From Penicillus capitatus (Eukaryota; Plantae; Chlorophyta): a DNA stretch of 64,000 nucleotides. Location: NCBI GenBank assembly GCA_965649825.1, contig OZ287701.1:423101-487100 (forward strand), in the 5' to 3' direction. The translations under genes were made by a program, and so were the position numbers. This document shows, one piece after another, positions 4,892 through 53,800 of the stretch. The notes under the pieces were generated by a model that had not been told where the DNA came from, did no database searches, and saw only the letters and a program-made list of their open reading frames with translations. Each line of letters opens with the position of its first letter. Position 1 is the stretch's first letter.

Positions 4892-4963
4892 AGGTCGTAC
4901 CGAGATTCGAACTCGGGTTATTGGATTCAGAGTCCAATGTCATAACCACTAGACCATACGACC
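4892..4963 (-). tRNA. trnQ-CUG: tRNA-Gln(CTG)
   Basis: Reverse complement is GGTCGTATGGTCTAGTGGTTATGACATTGGACTCTGAATCCAATAACCCGAGTTCGAATCTCGGTACGACCT: 7-bp acceptor stem, TTGGA/TCCAA anticodon stem with CTG, GTTCGAATC T-loop, 72 nt. Confidence 0.97.
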
Positions 4964-5190: not shown

Positions 5191-7055
5191 ATGGCCGCTC
5201 CAGCTGTCGATGCTTCGCGTGTGGCTGAGGAGATAGGGGGAGCGCCGCCCGAGACGCCGCTTCTCAAGGAGTCGGCGGATTGGAAGCTCCATGCGCCGGC
5301 TTACAAGATCGACCCACGTGACGTCGATACCCCCGACAGTTGGGTGCCGCGTAACAAGAGCATGTCGCGCAACACGGGTCGCCATCCCTTTAACTCGGAG
5401 GCGCCGATTGACGAGCTCATGGATGCCGGATTTATCACACCGGTCTCGCTTCACATTGTCCGAAACCACGGCGCCGTGCCAAAACTCGACTGGAAGACGC
5501 ATCGTATAGAGATTGGTGGCATGGTGGAGAAGCCCATGTCGATCAGCATGGACGAATTGGTGAAGTTCAAGACCATCACCGTCGCAGCAACGGTGACCTG
5601 TGCGGGAAATCGCCGCAAAGAGGAGAACATGATTAAGCGCACCATCGGATTTGATTGGGGGGCATCTGCCACATCGTGCAGTTACTGGACAGGTGCGATG
5701 GATGCAGAGGAACATGTGTGCCAATGTATATACCAGGTGTGAGATTGTGTGACATTTTGAGACACGTCGGGGCAAAGGGACCGAATCAAGGCGCAAAGTA
5801 TGTCTGTTTTCGTGGGCCGCTCGGTGAGCTGCCCCAAGGAGAAGACGGCTCATACGGCACGTCCATGACATTGAGTCATGCAATGGATCCGGCAAACGAC
5901 GTCATCCTTGCTTTCAAGCAGAATGGAAGGTCACTCTTCTCACTCTTCTTGCATCAGGCGCATGAGCATTGTCTACGGTAGATGGTTGGCTCCGGATCAT
6001 GGATTTCCCGTTCGATTGTTGATTCCGGGATTCATCGGAGGCCGAATGGTTAAGTGGCTCTGCGAGATCACCGTGACAACGGCAGAGTCGAACAATCACT
6101 ATCACTTCTTCGACAATCGCGTCTTGCCTCCTCATGTCGACAAAGACATTGCCAAGGCCGAAGGTGATCCCCCTTCATAACCGTCATCCTTTGAGAGTGC
6201 CGTTTCAGGATGGTGGTTCAAACCGGACTACATTATCAATGAACTCAACATCAACTCGGCCGTGGCCAGACCGTGGCACGATGAAGTCGTTCTAATGAAT
6301 GAGAATAAACCGTACACCATCACAGGCTACGCCTACACAGGTGTGACTTGTCTGAGATATCGGGTCCTGAAGGATGTGTGTGGGTTGAAGGCGGCGGGCG
6401 TTTCGTTATTCGTTGCGAAGTGTCGCTGGACGACGGCAAGACGTGGCGTCAAGCCAACATCCGTCGTTTTGAGAAACCGAATCCCTACGGCAAGTACTGG
6501 TCCTGGGTGTTCTGGGATCTGACCGTTTCGACCTTTGAGTTTACACAATGCAAGGAACTGCTGTGCCGTTCTTGGGATTCTTCTCAGAACGGACAGCCAG
6601 AGCACATCACATGGAATGTCATGGGTATGATGAACAACTGCTATTTCCGTATCCAGATCCATCCCTACAACCATGGCAGCAGCATCGGACTGCGTTTTCA
6701 ACATCCGGCGCCGCTGTATGAAGGCAAGATCGGAACAAAAGGGTGGAGAGAGGCAACGGCACCCGTCGAGGTCGATGCGAAAGCCGAAGTAAAGGCGTCG
6801 ACGATCAAGAAAGAGACAAAGGTGGTTAAGTACACGATGGAAGAGATCGAGAAGCACGACAACGAGAAGTCCTGTTGGTTCGTGCGTGGCGGCCGCGTTT
6901 ACGATGCGACATCGTATCTGGATGATCATCCTGGCGGCGCAGAGTCCATTCTGCTAGTGGCTGGGCAAGACGCCACCGTCGAGTTTGATTCGGTGCACTC
7001 CGAAGAGGCCAAGAAGCAGTTGGAAGATTACTACATTGGAGACGTCGCTCCATAA
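5191..7055 (+). CDS. NIA: Nitrate reductase-type protein with Moco, dimerisation and cytochrome b5 domains, lacking the C-terminal FAD/NAD(P)H domain
   Basis: Motifs [18 protein letters not shown] (Moco Cys), [33 protein letters not shown] and b5 heme motifs HPGG / HSEEA. TAA at 7053-7055 follows directly after the b5 domain. About five exons. Confidence 0.92.
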
Positions 7056-7130
7056 GCCAAACAATTTGAAGAATGTGACTGTTGTGAATGCTTTGTTGAC
7101 GGCGTTTGATTTTTGACTCGATTCCGTCGT

Positions 7131-9007
7131 TTAACACGGACGCTGTGTTCGGTAGAGAGCATCGGCAAGGGAGAGCACCCCGCAGGCCATCTCAGGGTTA
7201 TGCATACGGATGATATCCGCTCCGTTGCGCACGCAGTCCAGTGCAGCAGCACAAGAGATGACATCTCGCTCCTGTGGCGCATTCTGCCCTGAGTGAACAT
7301 CGATCGTTCGGCCAGGGGATGTGACGTGCGATGAGGTGCGTCCACCTGTGAAGGCTGTTAGGAAGCGTTTGCGTGAGAGGCCAATAAGCAACGGCATCTT
7401 GGCACAGGTGCCTCTGAAAATCTCCCGTTTCATGCGTCCCAACTCCTGTAGCACCTTGAACGACGTTTCAGTCGTTTTGGAGAAACCGATGCCTGTCCAT
7501 TCCACGCAGCGTGATTAAGGATCGAGTGCGAGCACGTGGTGGATGGACACCTGGATCTAGGATCTGTTTCCATGCAGGGATGCCGCATTCCATCGACTCC
7601 TCGGACACGATCTGCAATTCCATGCCGATGTCTCGCAACGGATCGGTAGAGTAGCTGAGATTCTCGACGTGGGTCATCGTCTGTGGTGTTCCTCTCATGT
7701 GCATCAGAAGCATGGGCACATCCAACTCTGCCACCTAAGGTCTCACGGCTCACGATCGAACGGACAGGAGGGGCTCGGAACACTGTTTGTCGCATCTGCG
7801 GATCTCTCTCCCCGGCAGAGATATCGTTCACCAGATCTGCTCCCAATTCGATGGCCTCTCGGGCGACGGAAGCATAGAAGCTGTCGATTGAGAGATAGGG
7901 ACACGTTTCGCCCAACGCCTCTTTCAGTAGCCTGAATCGCAGATGTGTTTTTAGTACATAAGAGAAAAACGCATCTTCTGCCTGATGACGGCGAAAACGC
8001 GTTCGCCTTCGATCTCTTCGGCCACGGCCGATGCGCCAGGACGCGTGGACTGACCTCCGATGTCAATAATACGTGCGCCGCACGAGACTGCCTCTACAGG
8101 ACACACACTTGAATCATATTGTGATGTGACAGCACAGTACTTTGGGCACTCTCGACCACAGCCGCTTTGTTCAGCTCCTGTCGATTTCCCATAAGAAAGC
8201 TCCCGCCATCGCTGAAGCTATCAGGGGTAATGTTCAGAATATGCATCATCCATGTTTTGGTGCCAAATGCCTCTAAGCGATCTCTGCCCAGAACGGTCAC
8301 CTGACGCACCTTCTTGTCGTCGTCTCCGATCGGCACCTTCTCTACCTCAGACAGCCGATCTCTCACCTAAGCCGCCGCCTCAGCTGAGCATATAGATATC
8401 GTAATCGAACCGGATGCGGCGAAGCTGTGTGGACGGAAAAGTAAGACTGTGCCAGATCTCGCAACGGAACCTTCACAAAGTCTCGCGCCATCCATCTATC
8501 CACACAAAAGTGTGACCTCTCTTCATTGTGTGATATCGTTACCTAGGATGTGGAATCGTGAGGTCGTCTTCGCGCATCTCTTGGTTTCCATAGAAGATAA
8601 TGTCCAGGTCAATGGATCGTGGGCCATAACGCATGGCGGTAAAATCCCTTCCCATCTCCGCTTCGATCTGTTTGAGCTTTTGCAGCAGCGTCCTCGGAGG
8701 ATCAGATGTCGTAGCCAGTACAGCAGCGTTCAGAAAATCAGGTTGATTCGTGATCTCTTCGGGGGATGTCTCGTACAGGCATGAATATCTCAAGATCTAA
8801 ATGTGATGTGACAGCTGGCCATATCGAAACGCCTCGACCCTACTCAAACCTGCACTCCGATCTGGCGCATTCCTCTCAGAGCAGCCGACAGATTTCGACA
8901 CCGATTCCCCTAGTCTCATATCCGTCCTCTTGCGCTACGTAGTGCGGAATGTTGGAGCCTACAATATTCGTGCCCAGTGCGATGACGACCTCCGCTGCAC
9001 CGGCCAT
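7131..9007 (-). CDS. folK/folP: Bifunctional HPPK-DHPS (folate synthesis)
   Basis: Spliced start MAGAAEVVIALGTNI|GNR, HPPK motif YGPRSIDLDII and IPHPR. DHPS motifs MHILNITPDSFSDGG, NDISAG, LMHMRGTP, ILDPG, IGLSRKRFL and DIIRMHN. Confidence 0.92.
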
Positions 9008-9140: not shown

Positions 9141-10477
9141 ATGGCTACCAAGGTAACGCCAAAGCCACGACGGTGCTATTCTCGAGGGGCATCCCATTCC
9201 GCAACGTCGCGTCAAAATCCCGTCCACCACTGAACGACGCTGTGTGTTCTCTAGTTCGTCACCGTTGGAGCGTCCTCGACCCATAGCCGTTCGGTACGTC
9301 GTCCTGCCCCTTGGCGCTGTCTTGACATACGCTTGCTGTGATCTTCAGTTCTATGGACCGCCGCGTGTTACCTCCAGTCCTCTCAGGCGGCCAGGCCTGT
9401 CGCGTAAAGGCTGTTCGATCTTCGCCTCGGCTGAAGTGAGCAGCGGCACGCGCAAGGACGTACCGCTCGAGCTGGAAGAAATTGGATTGCCCATGAATAC
9501 GTACTCGCCCAAGAAGCCTTTCACTGGCAAAGTCCGATCCGTCGAGCGCATCGTCGGGCCCAAGGCAACAGGAGAGACCTGTCACATCATCATTGAGACG
9601 GACGGGAAGATCCCGTTCGTCGAGGGACAGAGCTATGGTGTGATCCCACCGGGTACCAAAATCAACAGCCGTGGCAAAGAAGTCCCGCTCGGTACACGGC
9701 TCTACTCTATCGCCTCCACGCGCTATGGAGATTCTTTTGACGGCAATACGACATCCCTCTGCGTCCGACGGGCGACATACTGGGATGCGGATCTCGGCAA
9801 AGAAGATCCAGCCAAGAAAGGCATCTGCTCGAACTACCTCTGCGATGCGAAGCCAGGACAGCCCGTGACGATGACAGGGCCAACTGGGAAGATTCTGCTG
9901 ATGCCTGAAGATCAGAACACCCCCGTCATCATGGTGGCCACCGGAACGGGCATCGCACCGTACAGAGCGTTCTGGAGACGTATGTTTATGGAGAAGATCC
10001 CGAGCTATAACTTCACTGGACTGGCCTGGCTGTTCATGGGTGTGGCGAATTCGGATGCCAAACTCTACGACGATGAGATCCAGGAATTGGTCAGGTCGTT
10101 TCCCGATCAATTCCGAGTGGACTATGCCCTGTCGAGAGAGCAGAAGAACAAAGAGGGCGGCAAGATGTACATCCAGGCATGTCCTCGTAGGCTCTCACTC
10201 TTTTTCTCACTCTTCTTTAATGTTCAGGACAAGATGAAGGAGTACGCCACGGAGCTTTTTGATCTCCTGGCCAACGGAGCCCACATCTACTTCTGTGGAC
10301 TGAAAGGAATGATGCCAGGTGTGAGACGTCACGATCATCTCGCCCCAAAAGAGTGAGAACTGTTGCGAAGGTATCGACAGTATGTTGAGAGATGTGGCGA
10401 CGAATCAAGGACTGGACTACGATGAATGGCTCAAAGGACTGAAAGAGCGTGGCACGTGGCACGTCGAAGTCTACTGA
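9141..10477 (+). CDS. petH: Plastid ferredoxin-NADP+ reductase with transit peptide
   Basis: Spliced N-terminus MATK|[13 protein letters not shown]|FYGPP.., motifs [36 protein letters not shown] and C-terminal WHVEVY*. Confidence 0.96.
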
Positions 10478-27500: not shown

Positions 27501-30500
27501 CAATACAGCAAGATCTACGGGTCACGCATGAACCTCGAAGAAGCTGCAGCATGATCTCACCGCTATCTTTGTTTGGCCATTCGATGGTTTCGCCAAAGAT
27601 GTCCCTCACGGAGACACTGATCTCTTTGGCTGAACATTCTGCGTTCTCGTTAACCTTGGAAGAGATGCCCAGAAGATCTCCAGGAGATAATGACAAAGGT
27701 CCATCGACGTTCTCTATCTTCAAAGACGCAGCATCTGTCCCGATGTCATCCTGTCTGCTATTGTTGTTAGTCTAAATGACAATAGAAAAAGTGTGGTCAT
27801 CGAGGTAGGAAATAAACTCACGAGCATGCGATTGTCTGTCACAGTAAGGCATGTTTGATTTCCGAAAACACGTCCTTGGATGACGTCGTCAGCCCGTACA
27901 TCATCATGACAAACATATGCGAAGTTCGATATTGAACCCACATACAAGCCTCCTCCACTGTTTTCGGCGGTGTTTTGGGTCACATTCACCTTAGTGAACA
28001 TCACATGGCGGCAGCGATCATTCGGGGGCACGGCAGGAGGACAAGGAAAATCGCTGAAGTGTGACGGGTCTCCGTGGCTGCCTTCGAGATACATGCCACC
28101 TAGTGCACTTTCTAAGTATGCCCTTCGCGCACGGAGAAAGTACCTCCAGTAATGGCTTTGTTCTTTGACATCGTGATCTCTTCCAGTACCACATTCACAC
28201 GCGATCCACCTCTGGTATTATTAAGTGCAAGGTAGATGCCACCTCCTTTGCCTTGACGACGATCCTCAATATGTAGAAGGTACTGGCCACTCTGTTTCCT
28301 CATGTCGAGCCATGTTTGAACGAGGGAATCGCCATCATCTTCCAGCCATTTCAGTCCGAGTGCTCGGTTGCCTGTCAAATCCCATTCTCGGATCTGAAGG
28401 CAAGAAGAAGTCAGGAGGGACACGGCTGAGTGCTATTTACCTTAATGGATTGAGTCAGTTCGTGTTCGGAACTGATGTAGACGGCTCCGCCGAGCAGAGC
28501 TGCGTTGTTCTCATAGGTAAAACAACTTTGCGTTAGACATTCGTTCTTGATTCCTCCGGCGTTTCTGAGGCATATCGCTCCTCCAATCGAAGCGATGTTT
28601 CGCGTGAAGAGGACATGCGACTGCTGGTTCGAGAACAGACTCCCTCCCTCGAAAGATATGGCACCACCAGCGTTTGTTGCTATGTTCTCGGTGAAGGTAG
28701 TATCACAGAACTCTTGGATTTCGATGCTGCCTGTCATGCAACAGACACACGTTGCACGATGCAAACGTAAAGATGCAACGCACCGCATTGGAGGCAAGCA
28801 ATTGCACCGCCGGTCATGAGAGCGGCGTTAGATATGAAATGCACAGCGTTGGGATTAACCTCGGACACCCCTGGCGGAATCTGAAAGAAGCTTCCTTCTT
28901 GCAGTCCCAGTGCACCCCCCGAAAGAGCATGATTTGATTTGAAAGTGGTCAACTTGACCGTCATACTCGTTCGTCGAAATGCTCCTGCGCCACCGATACT
29001 GCCCGCTCTGTTCTCTTCAAACCAGCAGTGTGCGAACTCGGCAACGCCGCCAATCTTTAAAACGGCGCCGCCTTCTTCCGCTCTGTTGTGGCGCAAGACG
29101 GTCTCACTGCACGTCAAAATGTCGGCAGTCGACATAATGGCTCCTCCTCTGACAGTAGCTGTGTTGTTTGTAAACGTACAGTTATTCACTGTCATCCGAA
29201 CCTCGGCATCGACAGCCCCTCCCTGCTGTCCAGCGCTGTTGTTTTCGAAGGTGCACTTTTCAAACGAGACTCTGTTTACCCAGACGGCGCCCGCTCTCTC
29301 CTCGGCTCTGTTGTTTACCATACTGCAATTGACAAATAACGCGTCGTAGAGACTGAGTGCACCTCCGCGCCTTCCAGCGCTGTTACTCTCCAGATGACAA
29401 TCCACAAAGCTTGCGTTTTTCTTCACATAAACTGCCCCTACATCACGATCGGCCGAATTCCCAAAGAAACGGCAGGCTTTAAAGATCGCGTCGCCACGCA
29501 CTTCCACGGGTTTGTCATTTCCAGCCTTGTTCTTCGTGAACTTGCAATCTTCGAATGTCGCATCTCCCATTACAACAACAGCTGGAGAGTTTCGCCCGGC
29601 AGTGTTGCCATCGAAATCGCAGCCATGGAATGTCGCGTCTTCTTCGACGGTGACGCCAGCACGGTCCGTTTCGGCGCTGTTGTTTGCAATATGGCAATCT
29701 CGCAGTTCTGCATTCCCTGTGATGTAAACGGCACCGAACATTTGTCCAGCTCTATTGTTCTTCATTCTGCAGTTCCGAAAAGTGGCGTTTCGCGCCACGA
29801 GAACTGCGCCTACGTTGATGGCGGTGTTATTCACAATGTCGCAGTCAAAGAAGCTAGCATTGCCCGCGGCAAAGACGCTTCCTACACTTCCGCTGGCGCT
29901 GTTACTTGCAATGCTGCAATGACTGAAAGTCACGGTTCCTTCATCCACAACAACTGCCCCTCCTTCAGCGCCACTGTTTCCCTCAAACTGGCAGTATTGA
30001 AAACTGGCATCGATGTTCGAAGTGTAAACGGCCCCTCCTCTCACAATCGCATTGTTGTTGTGAAATTCGCATCGCTCGGCCTTCACAGGAGCGTTCCGCA
30101 CATCCACAGCACCGCCAGTATCGGCACTGTTGTTTGTGAACTGCGTCTCGCTCAAGATCAACGCGCAGCCCATCCCTGATAGCGCACTCCCTCCTAGTTC
30201 TGGTGGAAGTTGGTTCTCGGCTGGAAGGATTGCAGACGGGACAGTCAATCCCTTCTTGGAGTTGTCTCTGAAAACGCAGCGCTCCATGGCTATCGAGCAC
30301 CCTAGTCAAAATCGCCATAAGGACTGATGATGCATTCAGTCGCTATTCGTACCTGCCGATTGCCAGCCCTCGTCGAAATCGTTCGAAAACGCTGTCCTAT
30401 ATCTGCGTTCGCGTGGTCCGACGGCGAAAGGCCATCGGGATCCCAAGACTTCGATGGCGGTAGCATTCTTGCACCCTCTGAATACCAGAGATTCGATCCG

Positions 30501-38108: not shown

Positions 38109-41100
38109 ATGTTCCAACTCCACGTTCCGCAGTTGTGGGATCCTGTCAGCGTCGCGAGGACATTTCCCTCGCTCACATCTCGTCATCGCCGCCACGGGGA
38201 GACCTCGTCAGGCATCTTCTTCAGAGGACACTGCCGTGAGCGGGCTCCCCGAGCCAAAACGCACGTGCAGAGGGGCATGACAAGCAGGGACTATCCTTCG
38301 TTTCACTCGCGTGGATCCTCTTTCAGTCAGGCAGAACGGTCTCGCTCCCAGGCTCTCGGAAGCGACTGTGCAGAGGTGCTCACGTCTTCTCCCTGCTACA
38401 GCTTTCAGCCCTCTTCTCAGGGAGTCTCCGAGGAAATCTGCGAGGTTGAGGTCGAGGCACATGGCCTCGTGCAGATCTTTCGGACGGGAAAGAAGTTCGC
38501 AGGGAGGATTCTGGAGCGAGTGGGACCGTTCTCCCGGAATCTGACGGTCCCGCTCTACTGCAAGGGCTTCTGCGATCCGGGAGAGGCGACGAGAGACCTG
38601 GCCCGCCTGCCGCCGGGGGCCGCACGTCATCGCGTTCACGTTCTGTCCGATCCGGCTCGCGGCGCGGAGAGACTCGTCTTCGTGGGCGATCTTGGTCTCA
38701 GAGGCGGCGGAGACAGAGACCCTCCGTCCGACAGCGATTCGCCGGGACGCCGGGCTGCCTCCCGGTTTCGGCGGAGGAGGGACCATCGTCTGGTCGAGCC
38801 TTACATCGTTCGCTACTTTGTCGGGAGAAAGGACGAACTCAGCGAGATGATTGAAGCGTTCGAGTCGAGCGACGAGTCGCTTGTCGTCAAAGCAATCGTA
38901 GGCCCGGGCGGCATCGGGAAGACTCAGCTCGCGACACGGCTGTTCGACCTCTTCAGAGGAAAGCGCCACTACGACGACGAGTTCTGGATACCTTCAAGCT
39001 CAAGAGAGACCCTCACTGCCACGTTCCTGCAAATCGCAGAATACCTGCGAGTTCGCACCGACACCGAAACCCCGGAGATTATCAAACGTGTTCGAGAAGA
39101 GCTCGGACGATCTCACTGTTTCTACGTCTTCGACGACGCTCCAAATTTCGAACTGATTCGCGAGTATGTTCCGGCGACAAGCGGACATGTCATCGTCACA
39201 ACGAGGGATGCTGGAGGCGGAGACTGGGAGAGCAACATGCTTCGACTGGGACCGTTCGACGAAGACGAAGCTCGGATTCTGGCAGAGAGACTCGAATGTG
39301 GCAGGTCGATGCGACCGAACGATCTGGACGACCTACTGGACCTGTTGCCTCGGATCCCGCTGGTCCTCGCTCAATTCTTCTCCGTGATGCGGGACGAAGA
39401 AAGGTTGAGCCCCGCCGAATGGGTGCAGCGTCTGCTGCGGTACGAAGTCACGGGACGAGAGGCCAAAGCGATAGAAGAGCTCTCAACGACGCGAATCGGC
39501 GAAGAAGCGAGCGGAATGGTCTTCGTGTTCAACTGGAGCGTGCAAAGGATTTCGGAGGAACCCAACGACCTCGGCCTTTTTTCGCTCGACATTCTCGCCA
39601 AGCTAGCGCTACTTGATCCGAATGGTGTGCCCGTCGAGTGGATGTACAAGTGGCACGAAGCTGATGGTGGAGAGTTCGCGGAAAGAACGCAGAATTCCAT
39701 AAGGATCCTTGAGCGCTTCTCTCACGTCGAGTGGGACAGACGGAAGAATCAAATCTACATCCACGCCGAGACGCAACTTTTAGTGAGACACCTCCTCCTA
39801 AAAAGCGATGACAGTGCTTCCAGCCACATTCCAGAGTCCGAAGAACAACACAAGAACGAGATCGGAGACCACGTGAAGACCATAGTGGATTCAATCGGCC
39901 GATACATTGACGAGTGGAGAACGGACCGTTCGAACCGAGAACTGTGGTCCTCGCTCGCAAGAAACGGGTCGACACTCCTCAAACACTGCGAAAGCTCGGA
40001 GGACGCTAGCGTGGAAATAAAGTTACTCCAACACACAACACGATCGTACACAGAGATATGCATGTTTCAAGAATCGCTTACCTATGCTCAAAAAGCACTC
40101 GACATGTGCGAGCGCCTTCACGGCGACGCGGACCATCCGAACACCGTCCAGTGCATCAAGAGCTACGCCGTCGGACTCGGACGAACGGGGAGAGACAACG
40201 AGGCCGTGCCGCTCTTTAAGAGGGCCCTCGACATGTGCGAGCGTCTTCACGGCGACGCGGACCATCCGGACACCGTCGAGTGCATCAAGAGCTACGCCGT
40301 CGGACTCGACCGAACGGGGAGAATCGACGAGGCCGTGCTGCTCGACAAGAGGGCCCTCGACATGTGCGAGCGCCTTCACGGCGACGCGGACCATCCGGAC
40401 ACCGTCCAGTGCATTAAGAGCTACGCCGTCGGACTCGGACGAACGGGGAGAGACAACGAGGCCGTGCCGCTCTTTAAGAGGGCCCTCGACATGTGCGAGC
40501 GTCTTCACGGCGACGCGGACCATCCGGACACCGTCCAGTGCATCAAGAGCTATTCCGCCGGACTCGGACGAACGGGGAGAATCAACGAAGCCGTGCCGCT
40601 CTACAAGAGGGCCCTCGACATGTGCGAGCGTCTTCACGGCGACGCGGACCATCCGGACACCGTCCAGTGCATTAAGAGCTACGCCGTCGGACTCGGACGA
40701 ACGGGGAGAGACAACGAGGCCGTGCCGCTCTTTAAGAGGGCCCTCGACATGTGCGAGCGTCTTCACGGCGACGCGGACCATCCGGACACCGTCCAGTGCA
40801 TCAAGAGCTATTCCGCCGGACTCGGACGAACGGGGAGAATCAACGAAGCCGTGCCGCTCTACAAGAGGGCCCTCGACATGTGCGAGCGTCTTCACGGCGA
40901 CGCGGACCATCCGGACACCGTCCAGTGCATTAAGAGCTACGCCGTCGGACTCGGACGAACGGGGAGAGACAACGAGGCCGTGCCGCTCTTTAAGAGGGCC
41001 CTCGACATGTGCGAGCGTCTTCACGGCGACGCGGACCATCCGGACACCGTCCAGTGCATCAAGAGCTATTCCGCCGGACTCGGACGAACGGGGAGAATCA

Positions 41101-42194
41101 ACGAAGCCGTGCCGCTCTACAAGAGGGCCCTCGACATGTGCGAGCGTCTTCACGGCGACGCGGACCATCCGGACACCGTCCAGTGCATCAAGAGCTACGC
41201 CGTCGGACTCGGACGAACGGGGAGAGACAACGAGGCCGTGCCGCTCTTTAAGAGGGCCCTCGACATGTGCGAGCGTCTTCACGGCGACGCGGACCATCCG
41301 GACACCGTCCAGTGCATCAAGAGCTATTCCGCCGGACTCGGACGAACGGGGAGAATCAACGAAGCCGTGCCGCTCTTTAAGAGGGCCCTCGACATGTGCG
41401 AGCGTCTTCACGGCGACGCGGACCATCCGGACACCGTCCAGTGCATCAAGAGCTATTCCGCCGGACTCGGACGAACGGGGAGAATCAACGAAGCCGTGCC
41501 GCTCTACAAGAGGGCCCTCGACATGTGCGAGCGTCTTCACGGCGACGCGGACCATCCGGACACCGTCCAGTGCATTAAGAGCTACGCCGTCGGACTCGGA
41601 CGAACGGGGAGAGACAACGAGGCCGTGCCGCTCTTTAAGAGGGCCCTCGACATGTGCGAGCGTCTTCACGGCGACGCGGACCATCCGGACACCGTCGAGT
41701 GCATCAAGAGCTACGCCGTCGGACTCGGACGAACGGGGAGAGACAACGAGGCCGTGCCGCTCTTTAAGAGGGCCCTCGACATGTGCGAGCGTCTTCACGG
41801 CGACGCGGACCATCCGGACACCGTCGAGTGCATCAAGAGCTACGCCGTCGGACTCGGACGAACGGGGAGAGACAACGAGGCCGTGCCGCTCTTTAAGAGG
41901 GCCCTCGACATGTGCGAGCGTCTTCACGGCGACGCGGACCATCCGGACACCGTCGAGTGCATCAAGAGCTACGCCGTCGGACTCGGACGAACGGGGAGAA
42001 TCAACGAGGCCGTGCCGCTCTGCAAGAGGGCCCTCGACATGTGCGAGCGCCTTCACGGCGACGCGGACCATCCGGACACCGTCGAGTGCATGAGCACTTA
42101 TGCTGCTTGTTTGTCAAGAATCGGAAGGGACAATGAAGCTTTGTTGTGCACGGAGAGATTGAACAAAATGCGTAAACGTTTCGGTGACATATAA
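38109..42194 (+). CDS. NB-ARC (STAND) NTPase with 16 TPR repeats, NLR-like
   Basis: FVGRKDEL, P-loop GPGGIGKTQLA, Walker B FYVFDDA, HVIVTTRD, GLPL-like RIPLVL, then kinesin-light-chain-type TPRs; 1361-aa uninterrupted ORF. Confidence 0.92.
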   Translation: MFQLHVPQLWDPVSVARTFPSLTSRHRRHGETSSGIFFRGHCRERAPRAKTHVQRGMTSRDYPSFHSRGSSFSQAERSRSQALGSDCAEVLTSSPCYSFQPSSQGVSEEICEVEVEAHGLVQIFRTGKKFAGRILERVGPFSRNLTVPLYCKGFCDPGEATRDLARLPPGAARHRVHVLSDPARGAERLVFVGDLGLRGGGDRDPPSDSDSPGRRAASRFRRRRDHRLVEPYIVRYFVGRKDELSEMIEAFESSDESLVVKAIVGPGGIGKTQLATRLFDLFRGKRHYDDEFWIPSSSRETLTATFLQIAEYLRVRTDTETPEIIKRVREELGRSHCFYVFDDAPNFELIREYVPATSGHVIVTTRDAGGGDWESNMLRLGPFDEDEARILAERLECGRSMRPNDLDDLLDLLPRIPLVLAQFFSVMRDEERLSPAEWVQRLLRYEVTGREAKAIEELSTTRIGEEASGMVFVFNWSVQRISEEPNDLGLFSLDILAKLALLDPNGVPVEWMYKWHEADGGEFAERTQNSIRILERFSHVEWDRRKNQIYIHAETQLLVRHLLLKSDDSASSHIPESEEQHKNEIGDHVKTIVDSIGRYIDEWRTDRSNRELWSSLARNGSTLLKHCESSEDASVEIKLLQHTTRSYTEICMFQESLTYAQKALDMCERLHGDADHPNTVQCIKSYAVGLGRTGRDNEAVPLFKRALDMCERLHGDADHPDTVECIKSYAVGLDRTGRIDEAVLLDKRALDMCERLHGDADHPDTVQCIKSYAVGLGRTGRDNEAVPLFKRALDMCERLHGDADHPDTVQCIKSYSAGLGRTGRINEAVPLYKRALDMCERLHGDADHPDTVQCIKSYAVGLGRTGRDNEAVPLFKRALDMCERLHGDADHPDTVQCIKSYSAGLGRTGRINEAVPLYKRALDMCERLHGDADHPDTVQCIKSYAVGLGRTGRDNEAVPLFKRALDMCERLHGDADHPDTVQCIKSYSAGLGRTGRINEAVPLYKRALDMCERLHGDADHPDTVQCIKSYAVGLGRTGRDNEAVPLFKRALDMCERLHGDADHPDTVQCIKSYSAGLGRTGRINEAVPLFKRALDMCERLHGDADHPDTVQCIKSYSAGLGRTGRINEAVPLYKRALDMCERLHGDADHPDTVQCIKSYAVGLGRTGRDNEAVPLFKRALDMCERLHGDADHPDTVECIKSYAVGLGRTGRDNEAVPLFKRALDMCERLHGDADHPDTVECIKSYAVGLGRTGRDNEAVPLFKRALDMCERLHGDADHPDTVECIKSYAVGLGRTGRINEAVPLCKRALDMCERLHGDADHPDTVECMSTYAACLSRIGRDNEALLCTERLNKMRKRFGDI
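40089..42152 (+). repeat. Coding tandem array, 16 x 129 bp (43-aa TPR units)
   Basis: gacatgtgcgag recurs at 40101, 40230, 40359 ... 42036 with exact 129-bp spacing. Confidence 0.98.
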
Positions 42195-50800: not shown

Positions 50801-53800
50801 GTTTGTGTTGCTGATGCACACAATCCCGTTCTTAGCAGTGTATTCAGTTGTTCCACTAATGTGTTGAGATTCAAGCAATACAGCAAGATCTACGGGTCAC
50901 GCATGAACCTCGAAGAAGCTGCAGCATGATCTCACCGCTATCTTTGTTTGGCCATTCGATGGTTTCGCCAAAGATGTCCCTCACGGAGATACTGATCTCT
51001 TTGGCTGAACATTCTGCGTTCTCGTTAACCTTGGAAGAGATGCCCAGAGGATCTCCAGGAGATAATGACAAAGGTCCATCGACGTTCTCTATCTTCAAAG
51101 ACACAGCATCCGTCCCGATGTCATTAAATCTGCTATTCCTGTCGGTCTAAATGAACAACAGAGAAAGTGTGATTATGGAGATGGGGAACAAACTCACGAG
51201 CATGCGGTTGTCCGTCACAGTAAGGCATGTTCGATTTCCAAAAACATGTCCTTCTAAGACGTCATCTATCCCAGTATCATTATCATGACAAACATATGTG
51301 AAGTTCGATATTGAACCCACATACAAACCGCTTCCACTGTTTTCGGCAGTGTTTTGGGTTACATTTACACCACTAAACATTACACGACGGTAGCGCTGAT
51401 TTGGGAAGACGGTACGAGGACAAGGAGCTTTGCGGAAGCGTACCCCGTTTTCGTAGCTGCCTTCGAGATACATACCACCTAGTGAAGTCAGTCTCTCAGT
51501 CTGTATTTCGCACACGGAAAAACTCACCTCCAGTGAAGGCCTTATTCCTTAAGATCAAGATTTCTTCCAGCACCACATTCACACTCGATCCGCCCCTGGT
51601 GTTATTGAGAGAAAGGTAGAAGCCACCTCCTTCGCCTTGGTGGCGATCCTCGATATGTGATAGGTACTGATCATTCCGCTTCCTCACGTGAAGCCACCTT
51701 CGAACGAGAGTGTCGTCATCGGTTTTCAGTCTTTCCGGACTGAGTGCTCGGTTGTCGATCAGCTGCCAGCATTTGACCTAAAGGCCAGAGGAAGTCAAAA
51801 GGGACACGTTGGTGTAATTCTTGCCTCAATGGATTGAGACAGTTCGTGTTCGGAACTGATGTAGACAGCACCGCCGAGCACAGCTGTGTTGTTCGCATAG
51901 GTGAAACAGGGCGATGCTTGGCATTCGTTCTTGATCCCTCCGGCGTTTCTGAGGCATATCGCTCCTCCAATCGAAGCGATGTTTCGCGTGAAGAGGAGAT
52001 CTGAATACTGGTCCGAAAACAGAGTCCCTCCCTCGAAGAGCATTGCACCGCCAGCATTTGTTGCCAGATTCTCACTGAAGTGTGCCTGGCAGTAATTTTG
52101 GAAATCGATACTGCCTATCGTGCAACAAACACATGCTGAGCGATGTAAGCGTGGAAATACAACGTACCGCATTGGATGCAAGCAATTGCGCCGCCGGCCA
52201 TGAAAGCCGTGTTGGATATGAACCTTGCAATGCTCTGGGAGTGTCTGGATCCTCCTGCAATCTTAAAGTAGCTTCCTTCTTGCAGTCCCAATGCACCACC
52301 AATACGAGCACGGTTCGACTTAAAAACAGTAGTGACTTTTACCGTCACATTCGTTCGTCGAAATGCTCCTGCGCCGCCTATTCTGGCTCGATTTGCTTCG
52401 AATCTGCAGTCAGTGAAGTTGACAACGCCGTCAAGTGTCGAAATGGCACCGCCTTGTTTCGCTCTGTTATTATGCAAGACGAGATTGTTGCACGTCAAAC
52501 TGTCGGCAACCGACATGATGGCTCCTCCACTGCCACCAGATGTGTTGTTTGTGAACGTACAGTTATTCAATGTCGCCATTTTTCTTACGTAAAGAGCACC
52601 TCCTTGCAATCCAGCGCTGTTGTTTTCGAAAATGCAATCTTCAAATGAGCCTCTGAGTACGAAGATAGCACCCGCTATCCCTTCGGCCGTGTTGTTTATC
52701 ATACTGCAATTGAAAAAATACGCTTCCTCGACAAAGAATACTCCTACGTGTCCAGCAGTGTTGTTCAGAAAGCTGCAATTGGTGAAATTCCCTTTCCCAT
52801 TCACGACGCCAATTGCATAGCCGCTGGCCACGTTGTTCTCCAGCTGACAATCTATGAAATTCACGTTTCCCTTTACAGAGACTACCCCCGTGTTAGCACC
52901 GGCGGAGTTACCAACGAAACGACAGCTTTCGAAAAGCGCGTCGCCGAATACTGAAACTGTTCGATTGCTTCCAGCACTGTTGTTCACGAAGCTGCATCTT
53001 TTGCAGCTCGCGCTTCCCTTCACATAGACAATCAAATTTACCACGGCAGTGTTATCTTCAACGATGCAATTGACAAACATCGCATCACCTTCGATGAAGA
53101 TCGCAGCAAAGTCACGTCCCGACCAGTTTTTCGTCATGTTACAGTCTTCGAGTCTGGCACTGCCTGAAACTCTTACTGCAGATTGGCCTCTCTGAGCTCT
53201 GTTGTGATTAAAACTGCAGCGACTGAACTTGGCGACGCCTTTCACGAAGAGTCCGCCGCGGCGGAGGGCGGTGTTATTTGAGATGTCGCAATCATAAAAG
53301 GTAGCATCGCCGAAAGCAATAACGCCGCCGCCTTCGTTGGTGGCGTTGTTTTTTGTGATGCTGCATCGACTAAAGGTCACATTTCCTGAAAACACAAGAA
53401 CTGCCCCTCCGTCTTCGCCACTGTTTCCCTCGAACCGGCAGTGCTGAAAGCTTGCATCAATTTTGTCACAGAAAACGGCCCCCGCAATCAGCATCGCCTT
53501 GTTGTTGCGAAACTCGCATCGCTTGGCCCTCACAGGAGCGTTCCGCACATCCACAGCACCTCCAATGTCGGCACTGTTGTTTGTGAACTGCGTCTCGCTC
53601 AGGTTCAGCGCACAGCGATAAACTGATAACGCACTCCCGCCCAGATCTTGCGGTGAAGGGTTCTCGTGTGGAAGGTTAGCAGATGGAACAGTCGATCCCT
53701 TTTTGGAGTTGTCTCTAAATTCGCAGCGTTCCAGAGTCACCGAGCACCCTATTCATGATCGCCATGAGGATTGATGATGCATTCAGTCGCTATTCGTACC

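Follow-up and report, generated by a model that had tools for sequence, protein, structure and literature searches.

Can a eukaryotic nitrate reductase (NR) lose its own reductase module and still be kept as a functional gene? This question is raised by a gene at positions 5191-7055 (+) of a 64-kb stretch of Penicillus capitatus contig OZ287701.1, which we call the window; all window searches described here covered this stretch. Eukaryotic NR is the standard example of a three-cofactor chain fused in one polypeptide. The product of the window gene carries the molybdenum cofactor (Moco) domain, the dimerization domain, and the cytochrome b5 (b5) domain of this chain, and it ends there. We use the name NR-T for the truncated Moco-dimer-b5 paralog. 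With moderate confidence, we interpret NR-T as a functional Mo-heme terminal NR subunit, encoded by an old paralog that would have lost its C-terminal flavin adenine dinucleotide (FAD)/NADH module.

An NR that ends after the b5 domain

Pfam analysis of the 557-aa product identified Oxidored_molyb (PF00174) at residues 93-272 (E = 3e-56), Mo-co_dimer (PF03404) at residues 300-427 (E = 3e-47; profile positions 2-136 of 138), and Cyt-b5 (PF00173) at residues 485-555 (E = 3e-25); no match to FAD_binding_6 or NAD_binding_1 was returned for this protein. The protein ends with ...DYYIGDVAP, two residues past the b5 domain. A spacer of only 75 bp (7056-7130), delimited by open reading frame (ORF) ends, separates its stop codon from that of a convergent HPPK-DHPS gene, so there is no space for a reductase module. 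A hypothetical read-through of the TAA would meet a TGA 18 codons on. Introns and spacers in the window are generally very short. We used TBLASTN with isolated modules to look for NR-type FAD/NADH coding sequence across the window, accepting E-values up to 10, and found none; queries with whole NRs matched only the five exons of the gene. Based on these negative results, a distant FAD exon within the 57 kb downstream is excluded.

The product aligned to the Mo-domain structure of Pichia NR (2BIH) with an E-value of 3.5e-100. The Moco ligand Cys137 (codon 5599-5601) corresponds to Cys139 of 2BIH, and the residues equivalent to 2BIH Arg89 (VRNHG), Arg144 (GNRRKE), Trp158 (GFDWG), Asn272 (FDNRVLP), and Met427 (WNVMGMMNN) are all kept. 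Both heme-binding histidines are present, namely His516 (HPGG, 6927-6929) and His539 (VHS, 6996-6998). The two sites that define sulfite oxidases (Tyr322 and Arg450, chicken numbering) are occupied by Asn and Met. Among sulfite oxidases, the top matches were 3R19 and 3R18, which we take to be chicken variants engineered towards nitrate reduction; both scored above wild-type 1SOX, and the 3R19 chain has Asn at the Tyr322 position in the alignment. Aligned with cytosolic NRs, the product has no N-terminal extension or presequence.

The window protein thus has the features of the canonical eukaryotic NR class (EUKNR, EC 1.7.1.1-3) in its Moco domain with NR-type residues, its dimerization domain, its b5 domain with two histidines, and its phylogenetic placement; it lacks the C-terminal FAD_binding_6 and NAD_binding_1 domains in the same chain. 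On these features, the 557-aa protein is best classed as an NR by descent and active site, yet not as a complete NAD(P)H:NR. Lacking the FAD/NADH module, NR-T cannot oxidize NAD(P)H itself, and with no built-in electron input, its electrons must come from another protein. From this architecture, the isolated chain is predicted to have only the terminal (viologen) activity.

The gene is split into five exons and does not form a continuous ORF. Its four introns are 44-52 nt long with GT..AG boundaries (5693-5736, 5930-5981, 6164-6208, and 6341-6390), and splicing yields 1,674 nt of coding sequence, which comprise 557 codons and the TAA. The exon junctions are supported by an alignment of the product to homologous intron-free contigs, which showed no gap at any junction. 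Splicing, Pfam, and the 2BIH alignment place the start codon, the N-terminal region, and the first part of the Moco domain with the Cys137 codon in exon 1 (5191-5692, +). The Moco domain continues through exon 2 (5737-5929, +), as seen in the gap-free alignment to intron-free homologs, and ends in exon 3 (5982-6163, +), where splicing and the 2BIH alignment locate FFDNRVLP with its NR-type Asn. Exon 4 (6209-6340, +) contains the start of the dimerization domain, based on splicing and Pfam; exon 5 (6391-7055, +) contains its remainder (to ~6662), hinge 1, the b5 domain (6834-7046), and the TAA (7053-7055), based on Pfam and alignments. Three contigs from three sequencing runs (L003, L004, and L005) carry a truncated NR without any of the four introns of the window gene; these contigs are either RNA-derived assemblies or derived from intron-poor genomes.

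A sequence-only reading of this DNA had described the Moco cysteine, the dimerization domain, and both b5 histidines as intact, and Cys137, the Mo-co_dimer match, His516, and His539 bear this out. It had also placed the stop at YYIGDVAP, 75 bp from the convergent HPPK-DHPS stop, with no room for a diaphorase domain; the gap at 7056-7130, the Pterin_bind and HPPK matches beyond it, and the lack of FAD/NADH coding in the window agree with this account. The absence of frameshifts that it reported holds for the spliced sequence but not for a single ORF. The search that it proposed for a stand-alone NR-type FAD domain was made within the 64-kb window and found none. The four introns escaped the sequence-only reading, as did the lineage-wide status of the paralog and the position of the gene upstream of a ferredoxin-NADP reductase (FNR) gene.

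Conservation of the truncation in relatives

Truncated homologs of 553-565 aa were identified in Caulerpa lentillifera, another Caulerpa, Bryopsis, Ostreobium, and two further assemblies. The closest to the window protein is P0001 from Logan run SRR6256325 (553 aa, 86% identity), followed by g4749.t1 of C. lentillifera in EukProt (556 aa; 82% identity to the window protein and 89% to P0002) and P0002 from Logan run SRR2835676 (556 aa, 79%). Bryopsis sp. KO-2023 protein BSKO_12046 (561 aa) and Ostreobium quekettii protein P0004 (560 aa) each have 68% identity to the window protein, and P0006 from Logan run SRR23287135 (565 aa) has 65%. In all six relatives, the stop codon lies two to three residues past a conserved YYIGD[V/L] motif, and the stops of the truncated homologs fall no more than one codon apart. 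The stop codon is TGA in P0001 and P0002. The P0001 contig is transcript-like: it is 1,935 nt long, and its ORF is flanked by 130 nt on the 5′ side and 143 nt on the 3′ side. In the genomes of Bryopsis and Ostreobium, TBLASTN analysis detected no FAD/NADH coding in the 10 kb that follow the truncated NR, and there was none on the shorter downstream stretches of the other relatives' contigs.

The window gene and P0001 differ with a dN of 0.092 and a dS of 1.66, giving an omega of 0.056 (Nei-Gojobori). By region, omega is 0.03 for the Moco domain, 0.04 for the dimerization domain, 0.085 for the b5 domain, and 0.22 for the hinge; in comparisons of the window gene to members more distant than P0001, synonymous sites are saturated. 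Purifying selection is strong on every NR-T domain, including the heme domain. The sequence-only reading had named the same truncation in relatives and dN/dS as checks, and both the six homologs with the same end and the omega value speak for the truncation. On this comparative evidence, we regard the truncation as genuine, old, and selected, and as neither an assembly accident nor a dying gene.

The closest matches of the NR product, and of the product of the neighboring FNR gene, come from the siphonous ulvophytes Caulerpa, Bryopsis, and Ostreobium. From these matches alone, the source alga would belong to Bryopsidales or a closely related group; of the named taxa it is nearest to Caulerpa, although distinct from C. 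lentillifera. In public records, such sequences are labeled “hypothetical protein” or “Nitrate reductase [NADH],” and because truncated genes carry these labels, NR gene counts in seaweed genomes that are blind to domains are misleading.

A scan of 1.84 billion representative proteins also returned a few isolated Moco-dimer-b5 predictions in unrelated lineages, all lacking an FAD module. Among these are a 548-aa Logan protein and fungal models; the set includes P0334, P0343, P0385 (Cladochytrium tenue), and P0387 (Amylocystis lapponica). They are singletons, present on short contigs or as gene models, and may be partial. Nominally complete ORFs with only Moco and dimerization domains, which stop directly past the latter, in transcriptomes of Neomeris dumetosa and Acetabularia acetabulum (P0091 and P0093; 465-470 aa) were set aside as a probable artifact of TAA/TAG read as stops; in the code of Dasycladales, TAA and TAG specify Gln.

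Origin of NR-T

In neighbor-joining trees, NR-T falls inside the green-algal NRs and clusters with full-length Bryopsidales NRs, with weak bootstrap values for the cluster. In both the whole-length tree and the Moco-domain tree, the truncated Ostreobium protein groups with the full-length Ostreobium NR. However, the two Ostreobium genes (L002, truncated; L009, full-length) form a mosaic at synonymous sites: pS is 0.25 in residues 181-290 versus 0.43-0.50 in residues 1-180 and 0.64-0.81 in residues 291-560, the last being the level seen between species. This pattern indicates that the Ostreobium pair stems from an old duplication and that gene conversion later affected the Moco domain.

Because of the gene conversion over the Moco domain, we judged relationships on the dimerization and b5 domains instead (231 columns, 46 sequences). 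The six truncated proteins formed a clade in 64% of 500 bootstraps, versus 13% for a separate origin of the truncated Ostreobium copy. A single ancient Bryopsidales paralog as the source of NR-T is therefore favored by the trees but not proven. Two NR intron positions are common to the window, Bryopsis, and Ostreobium genes.

A second NR paralog with an FAD module

Ostreobium has a canonical 845-aa NR (P0007) alongside NR-T, and related transcriptomes contain canonical NRs of 825-850 aa in the same clade; the truncated and full-length transcript contigs each come from a different run. In C. lentillifera, the predicted protein g4793.t1 (P0034) has Moco, dimerization, FAD, and NAD domains, and its gene lies 44 gene numbers from NR-T. 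We doubt that g4793.t1 is a real b5-less NR: the start of the b5 domain (KTY) is retained, and ~85 residues are then skipped. The gap is probably a gene-model error, in the form of a mis-predicted intron.

Bryopsis sp. KO-2023 has a different second gene. BSKO_12082 (L010:6001-10086) lies ~355 kb from NR-T on the same contig, and it has a relative in another sample, the 85%-identical transcript P0088 (L006:264-2600). In BSKO_12082 and this relative, the Moco cysteine is replaced by Ser or Leu, Arg89 by Cys or Ser, and Arg144 by Gly, and the b5 domain has decayed to a Ser-rich relic; every FAD/NADH motif is kept. BSKO_12082 is under strong purifying selection; omega is 0.076 overall, with 0.023 in the FAD domain, 0.037 in the NAD domain, 0.063 in the dimerization domain, and 0.107 in the Moco-like region. 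Among the named Bryopsis proteins matched in our NR searches, there was no canonical NR. Based on these sequences, the Bryopsis pair is exactly complementary, with the Moco and heme in one protein and a dimerization scaffold with the FAD/NADH module in the other.

Electron supply to NR-T

If NR-T is a functional terminal subunit, nitrate would be reduced at the Moco, held by Cys137 in an NR-type pocket. The Moco would receive its electrons from the b5 heme of NR-T itself, and this heme would in turn accept electrons in trans from a reductase module carried by a second polypeptide. The most plausible donor would be the FAD/NADH module of the second NR paralog, brought together with NR-T in a heterodimer or heterotetramer through the dimerization domain; a free cytosolic NADH-cytochrome b5 reductase would rank second. 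We prefer the module of the paralog because the dimerization domain is conserved in both paralogs and because the Bryopsis pair is complementary. That NR-T reduces nitrate, that it enters a heteromer, and that the paralog serves as its donor are all inferred.

Three precedents lend plausibility to this scheme. Partial activity of terminal NR with artificial donors is known (PMC6473468), and the diaphorase part of NR feeds other proteins in trans, namely NOFNiR and THB1 (PMC6473468). Complementation between NR mutations that affect different domains is known from Nicotiana, according to work cited in 10.1101/2020.01.02.893016.

A more specific form of this scheme, which we offer tentatively, is that duplication and a complementary loss of domains have divided the Bryopsidales NR between two genes. 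The products would form a heteromer, in which a Moco-b5 subunit (NR-T) would be joined to an FAD/NADH paralog via the dimerization domain. The split would be obligate in Bryopsis, since the Moco site of the partner there is dead and its b5 domain is gone; in Caulerpa-like algae, including the source of the window, NR-T would share the module of a full-length NR. The split NR with a separate reductase that the sequence-only reading had proposed gains partial support from a truncation conserved in at least six taxa or assemblies, an omega of ~0.06, intact residues, and the complementarity in Bryopsis. That reading had given cytochrome b5 reductase as an example of the donor, and the evidence favors the FAD module of a paralogous NR at least as much as the free enzyme.

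Several points weigh against the interpretation of NR-T as a terminal subunit fed by a paralog. NR-T is not needed for nitrate reduction where a canonical NR coexists, as in Ostreobium and probably in Caulerpa, and its benefit there is unexplained. Bryopsis and one close relative are the only sources in which we found the paralog with a dead Moco site and an intact FAD module; the obligate split may therefore be specific to that lineage. An unannotated canonical NR could exist in the Bryopsis genome, and no partner gene of the source organism was seen within the window. Monophyly of the truncated set has moderate bootstrap support. An AlphaFold2 model of NR-T built on a 17-sequence alignment (mean pLDDT 59.5, pTM 0.42) is too poor for heme-Moco docking.

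The apparent redundancy of NR-T beside FAD-bearing NRs in Ostreobium, and probably in Caulerpa, would also be expected if the protein were a repurposed catalyst, with the Moco-heme pair fed by the cytosolic b5 reductase system and used to convert nitrite to NO or to act on another oxyanion. NR-related electron chains have been rewired for NO metabolism (PMC6473468), and an NO-forming nitrite reductase was the second option of the sequence-only reading. However, every residue of the NR-type pocket is unchanged, such that the active site has not diverged from that of assimilatory NRs, and the Pfam analysis of long window ORFs identified no NO-related genes nearby. Furthermore, the only intact Moco-b5 unit that we found in Bryopsis is that of its NR-T, which argues for an assimilatory role in that alga. 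We consider repurposing unlikely, and its nitrite-reducing version has gained no specific support.

The high conservation of the dimerization domain (omega 0.04) and the coexistence of FAD-bearing paralogs with NR-T would fit a non-catalytic modulator as well, in which NR-T would form heterodimers with full-length NR and tune its NADH:NR activity in a regulatory or dominant-negative manner. Under such a role, however, the catalytic residues and heme ligands would be needlessly constrained (omega 0.03 for the Moco domain and 0.085 for the b5 domain), and in Bryopsis it is the partner whose own catalytic site has been lost, contrary to the prediction of such a model. This role appears somewhat less probable than a repurposed catalyst.

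A sulfite-oxidase-like activity, in which a substrate would be oxidized at the Moco and the electrons would leave via the heme, is highly improbable: NR-T has the same domain content as animal sulfite oxidase, and sulfite oxidases are its next-best structural relatives, but Asn and Met of the NR type occupy the Tyr322 and Arg450 sites, the b5 domain is found at the C-terminus instead of the N-terminus, and NR-T nests within the NRs and not the sulfite oxidases. Finally, although the case for the source organism comes from assembled DNA, we give almost no weight to a misassembly at ~7055, an overlooked remote FAD exon, or a gene that has recently become a pseudogene: six independent assemblies, which span several genera, agree on where the protein ends, and three of these have TGA stops or transcript-like contigs; neither the window nor the flanking DNA of relatives contains FAD/NADH coding; and omega is 0.056.

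Comparison with described enzymes

Canonical EUKNRs, such as Chlamydomonas NIT1 (CHLRE_09g410950) and the Ostreobium 845-aa NR, share with NR-T the Moco pocket, the dimerization domain, hinge 1, and a b5 domain with both histidines, with 59-66% identity over the common region; unlike them, NR-T is without hinge 2, FAD_binding_6, and NAD_binding_1 (~290 aa). The cofactor set of NR-T equals that of terminal NR and of recombinant Mo-heme fragments of plant NR. Such recombinant fragments reduce nitrate with artificial donors. Terminal NR does so with reduced viologens, flavins, or bromophenol blue (PMC6473468). Whereas Mo-heme fragments are proteolytic or engineered pieces, NR-T is a natural gene that has been conserved throughout an order of algae.

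Of the natural NR variants described, the ichthyosporean CS-pNR of Creolimax and Sphaeroforma is nearest to NR-T; it likewise keeps the Moco-dimer-b5 part and has lost the canonical FAD/NADH module (PMC6400420). In CS-pNR, however, the N-terminal domains of NAD(P)H-nitrite reductase take the place of the lost module in cis (PMC6400420), whereas NR-T has no replacement; Pfam identified no domain after b5 in NR-T, which does not match the CS-pNR architecture. Animal sulfite oxidase (1SOX) resembles NR-T in its b5, Moco, and dimerization content and in its homologous Moco/dimer fold (E = 2e-81); it differs in having an N-terminal b5 domain, Tyr322 and Arg450, and the opposite electron flow, compared with the C-terminal b5 domain and the Asn and Met of NR-T. 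The Chlamydomonas pairs NR:NOFNiR(ARC) and NR:THB1 illustrate NR redox modules that serve partners in trans (PMC6473468); in these pairs, full-length NR donates electrons outward, whereas NR-T would be a recipient. In full-text literature searches, we found no account of an NR without its reductase module, whether from Bryopsidales or from other organisms.

A natural and conserved reductase-less NR shows that the fused chain can be broken yet kept, which makes NR-T relevant to research on molybdoenzymes and on protein-domain evolution. NR-T also makes the passage of electrons between NR subunits testable in vivo, and the complementary Bryopsis paralog, if true, would be a clear natural case of domain-level subfunctionalization in an oligomeric enzyme. 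These results bear on the nitrogen physiology of siphonous seaweeds that are ecologically or commercially important, including Caulerpa, Bryopsis, and Ostreobium, the last of which lives in coral skeletons.

Neighboring genes

A gene identified by homology as encoding a plant-type FNR (9141-10477, +; protein end ...HVEVY; first 12-nt exon tentative) lies 2 kb downstream of the NR gene on the same strand. The order of NR followed by FNR also occurs in Caulerpa, where the two genes are directly adjacent (L003:2018-5160), and in C. lentillifera (g4749 and g4748). In the window, the HPPK-DHPS gene (7131-8793, -) is inserted between them on the opposite strand, convergent to NR; its DHPS C-terminus (7131-7505; Pterin_bind, E = 8e-12) and its HPPK part (8539-8793; HPPK, E = 1.5e-21) were matched, and position 8793 is the end of the HPPK match, the 5′ end of the gene being unmapped. 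In Ostreobium (L009:6001-15660), it is the full-length NR that lies upstream of FNR. NR-T in the window thus holds the same position relative to FNR as the canonical NR in Ostreobium, and because the full-length gene shares this adjacency, the adjacency predates the truncation or is independent of it. The layout is compatible either with tandem duplication next to FNR in an ancestor or with a loss of the module from the gene at its original site.

We rejected FNR as the electron donor for NR-T. The FNR protein has a transit-peptide-like N-terminus and a canonical ...VEVY end, and its relatives are annotated as chloroplastic, whereas NR-T is without a presequence. The FNR gene contains a 51-nt in-frame GC-AG intron (10177-10227) that is read as extra residues in the raw ORF; the Caulerpa contig L003 lacks this intron.

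Upstream of the NR gene, a tRNA call places tRNA-Gln(CTG) at 4892-4963 (-), 228 bp from the NR start codon and between an ABC-2-type transporter gene and the NR gene. Pfam analysis of 20 long ORFs in the window identified no nitrate-assimilation cluster; the matches included ABC2 membrane, RWD/IBR, NB-ARC/TPR, Chlam_PMP-repeat, PAN, and acyltransferase-like domains. Chlam_PMP-repeat proteins are encoded twice in the window (28734-30287, -; 52115-53740, -), and in Bryopsis, the truncated NR is closely followed downstream by a gene for a 1,171-aa Chlam_PMP-repeat protein (L001:15622-20276). An uninterrupted 1,361-aa ORF at 38109-42194 (+) with NB-ARC and many TPR matches lies where the GC content of the window is highest (0.58-0.63), and long ORFs are also present there on the opposite strand and in a second frame.

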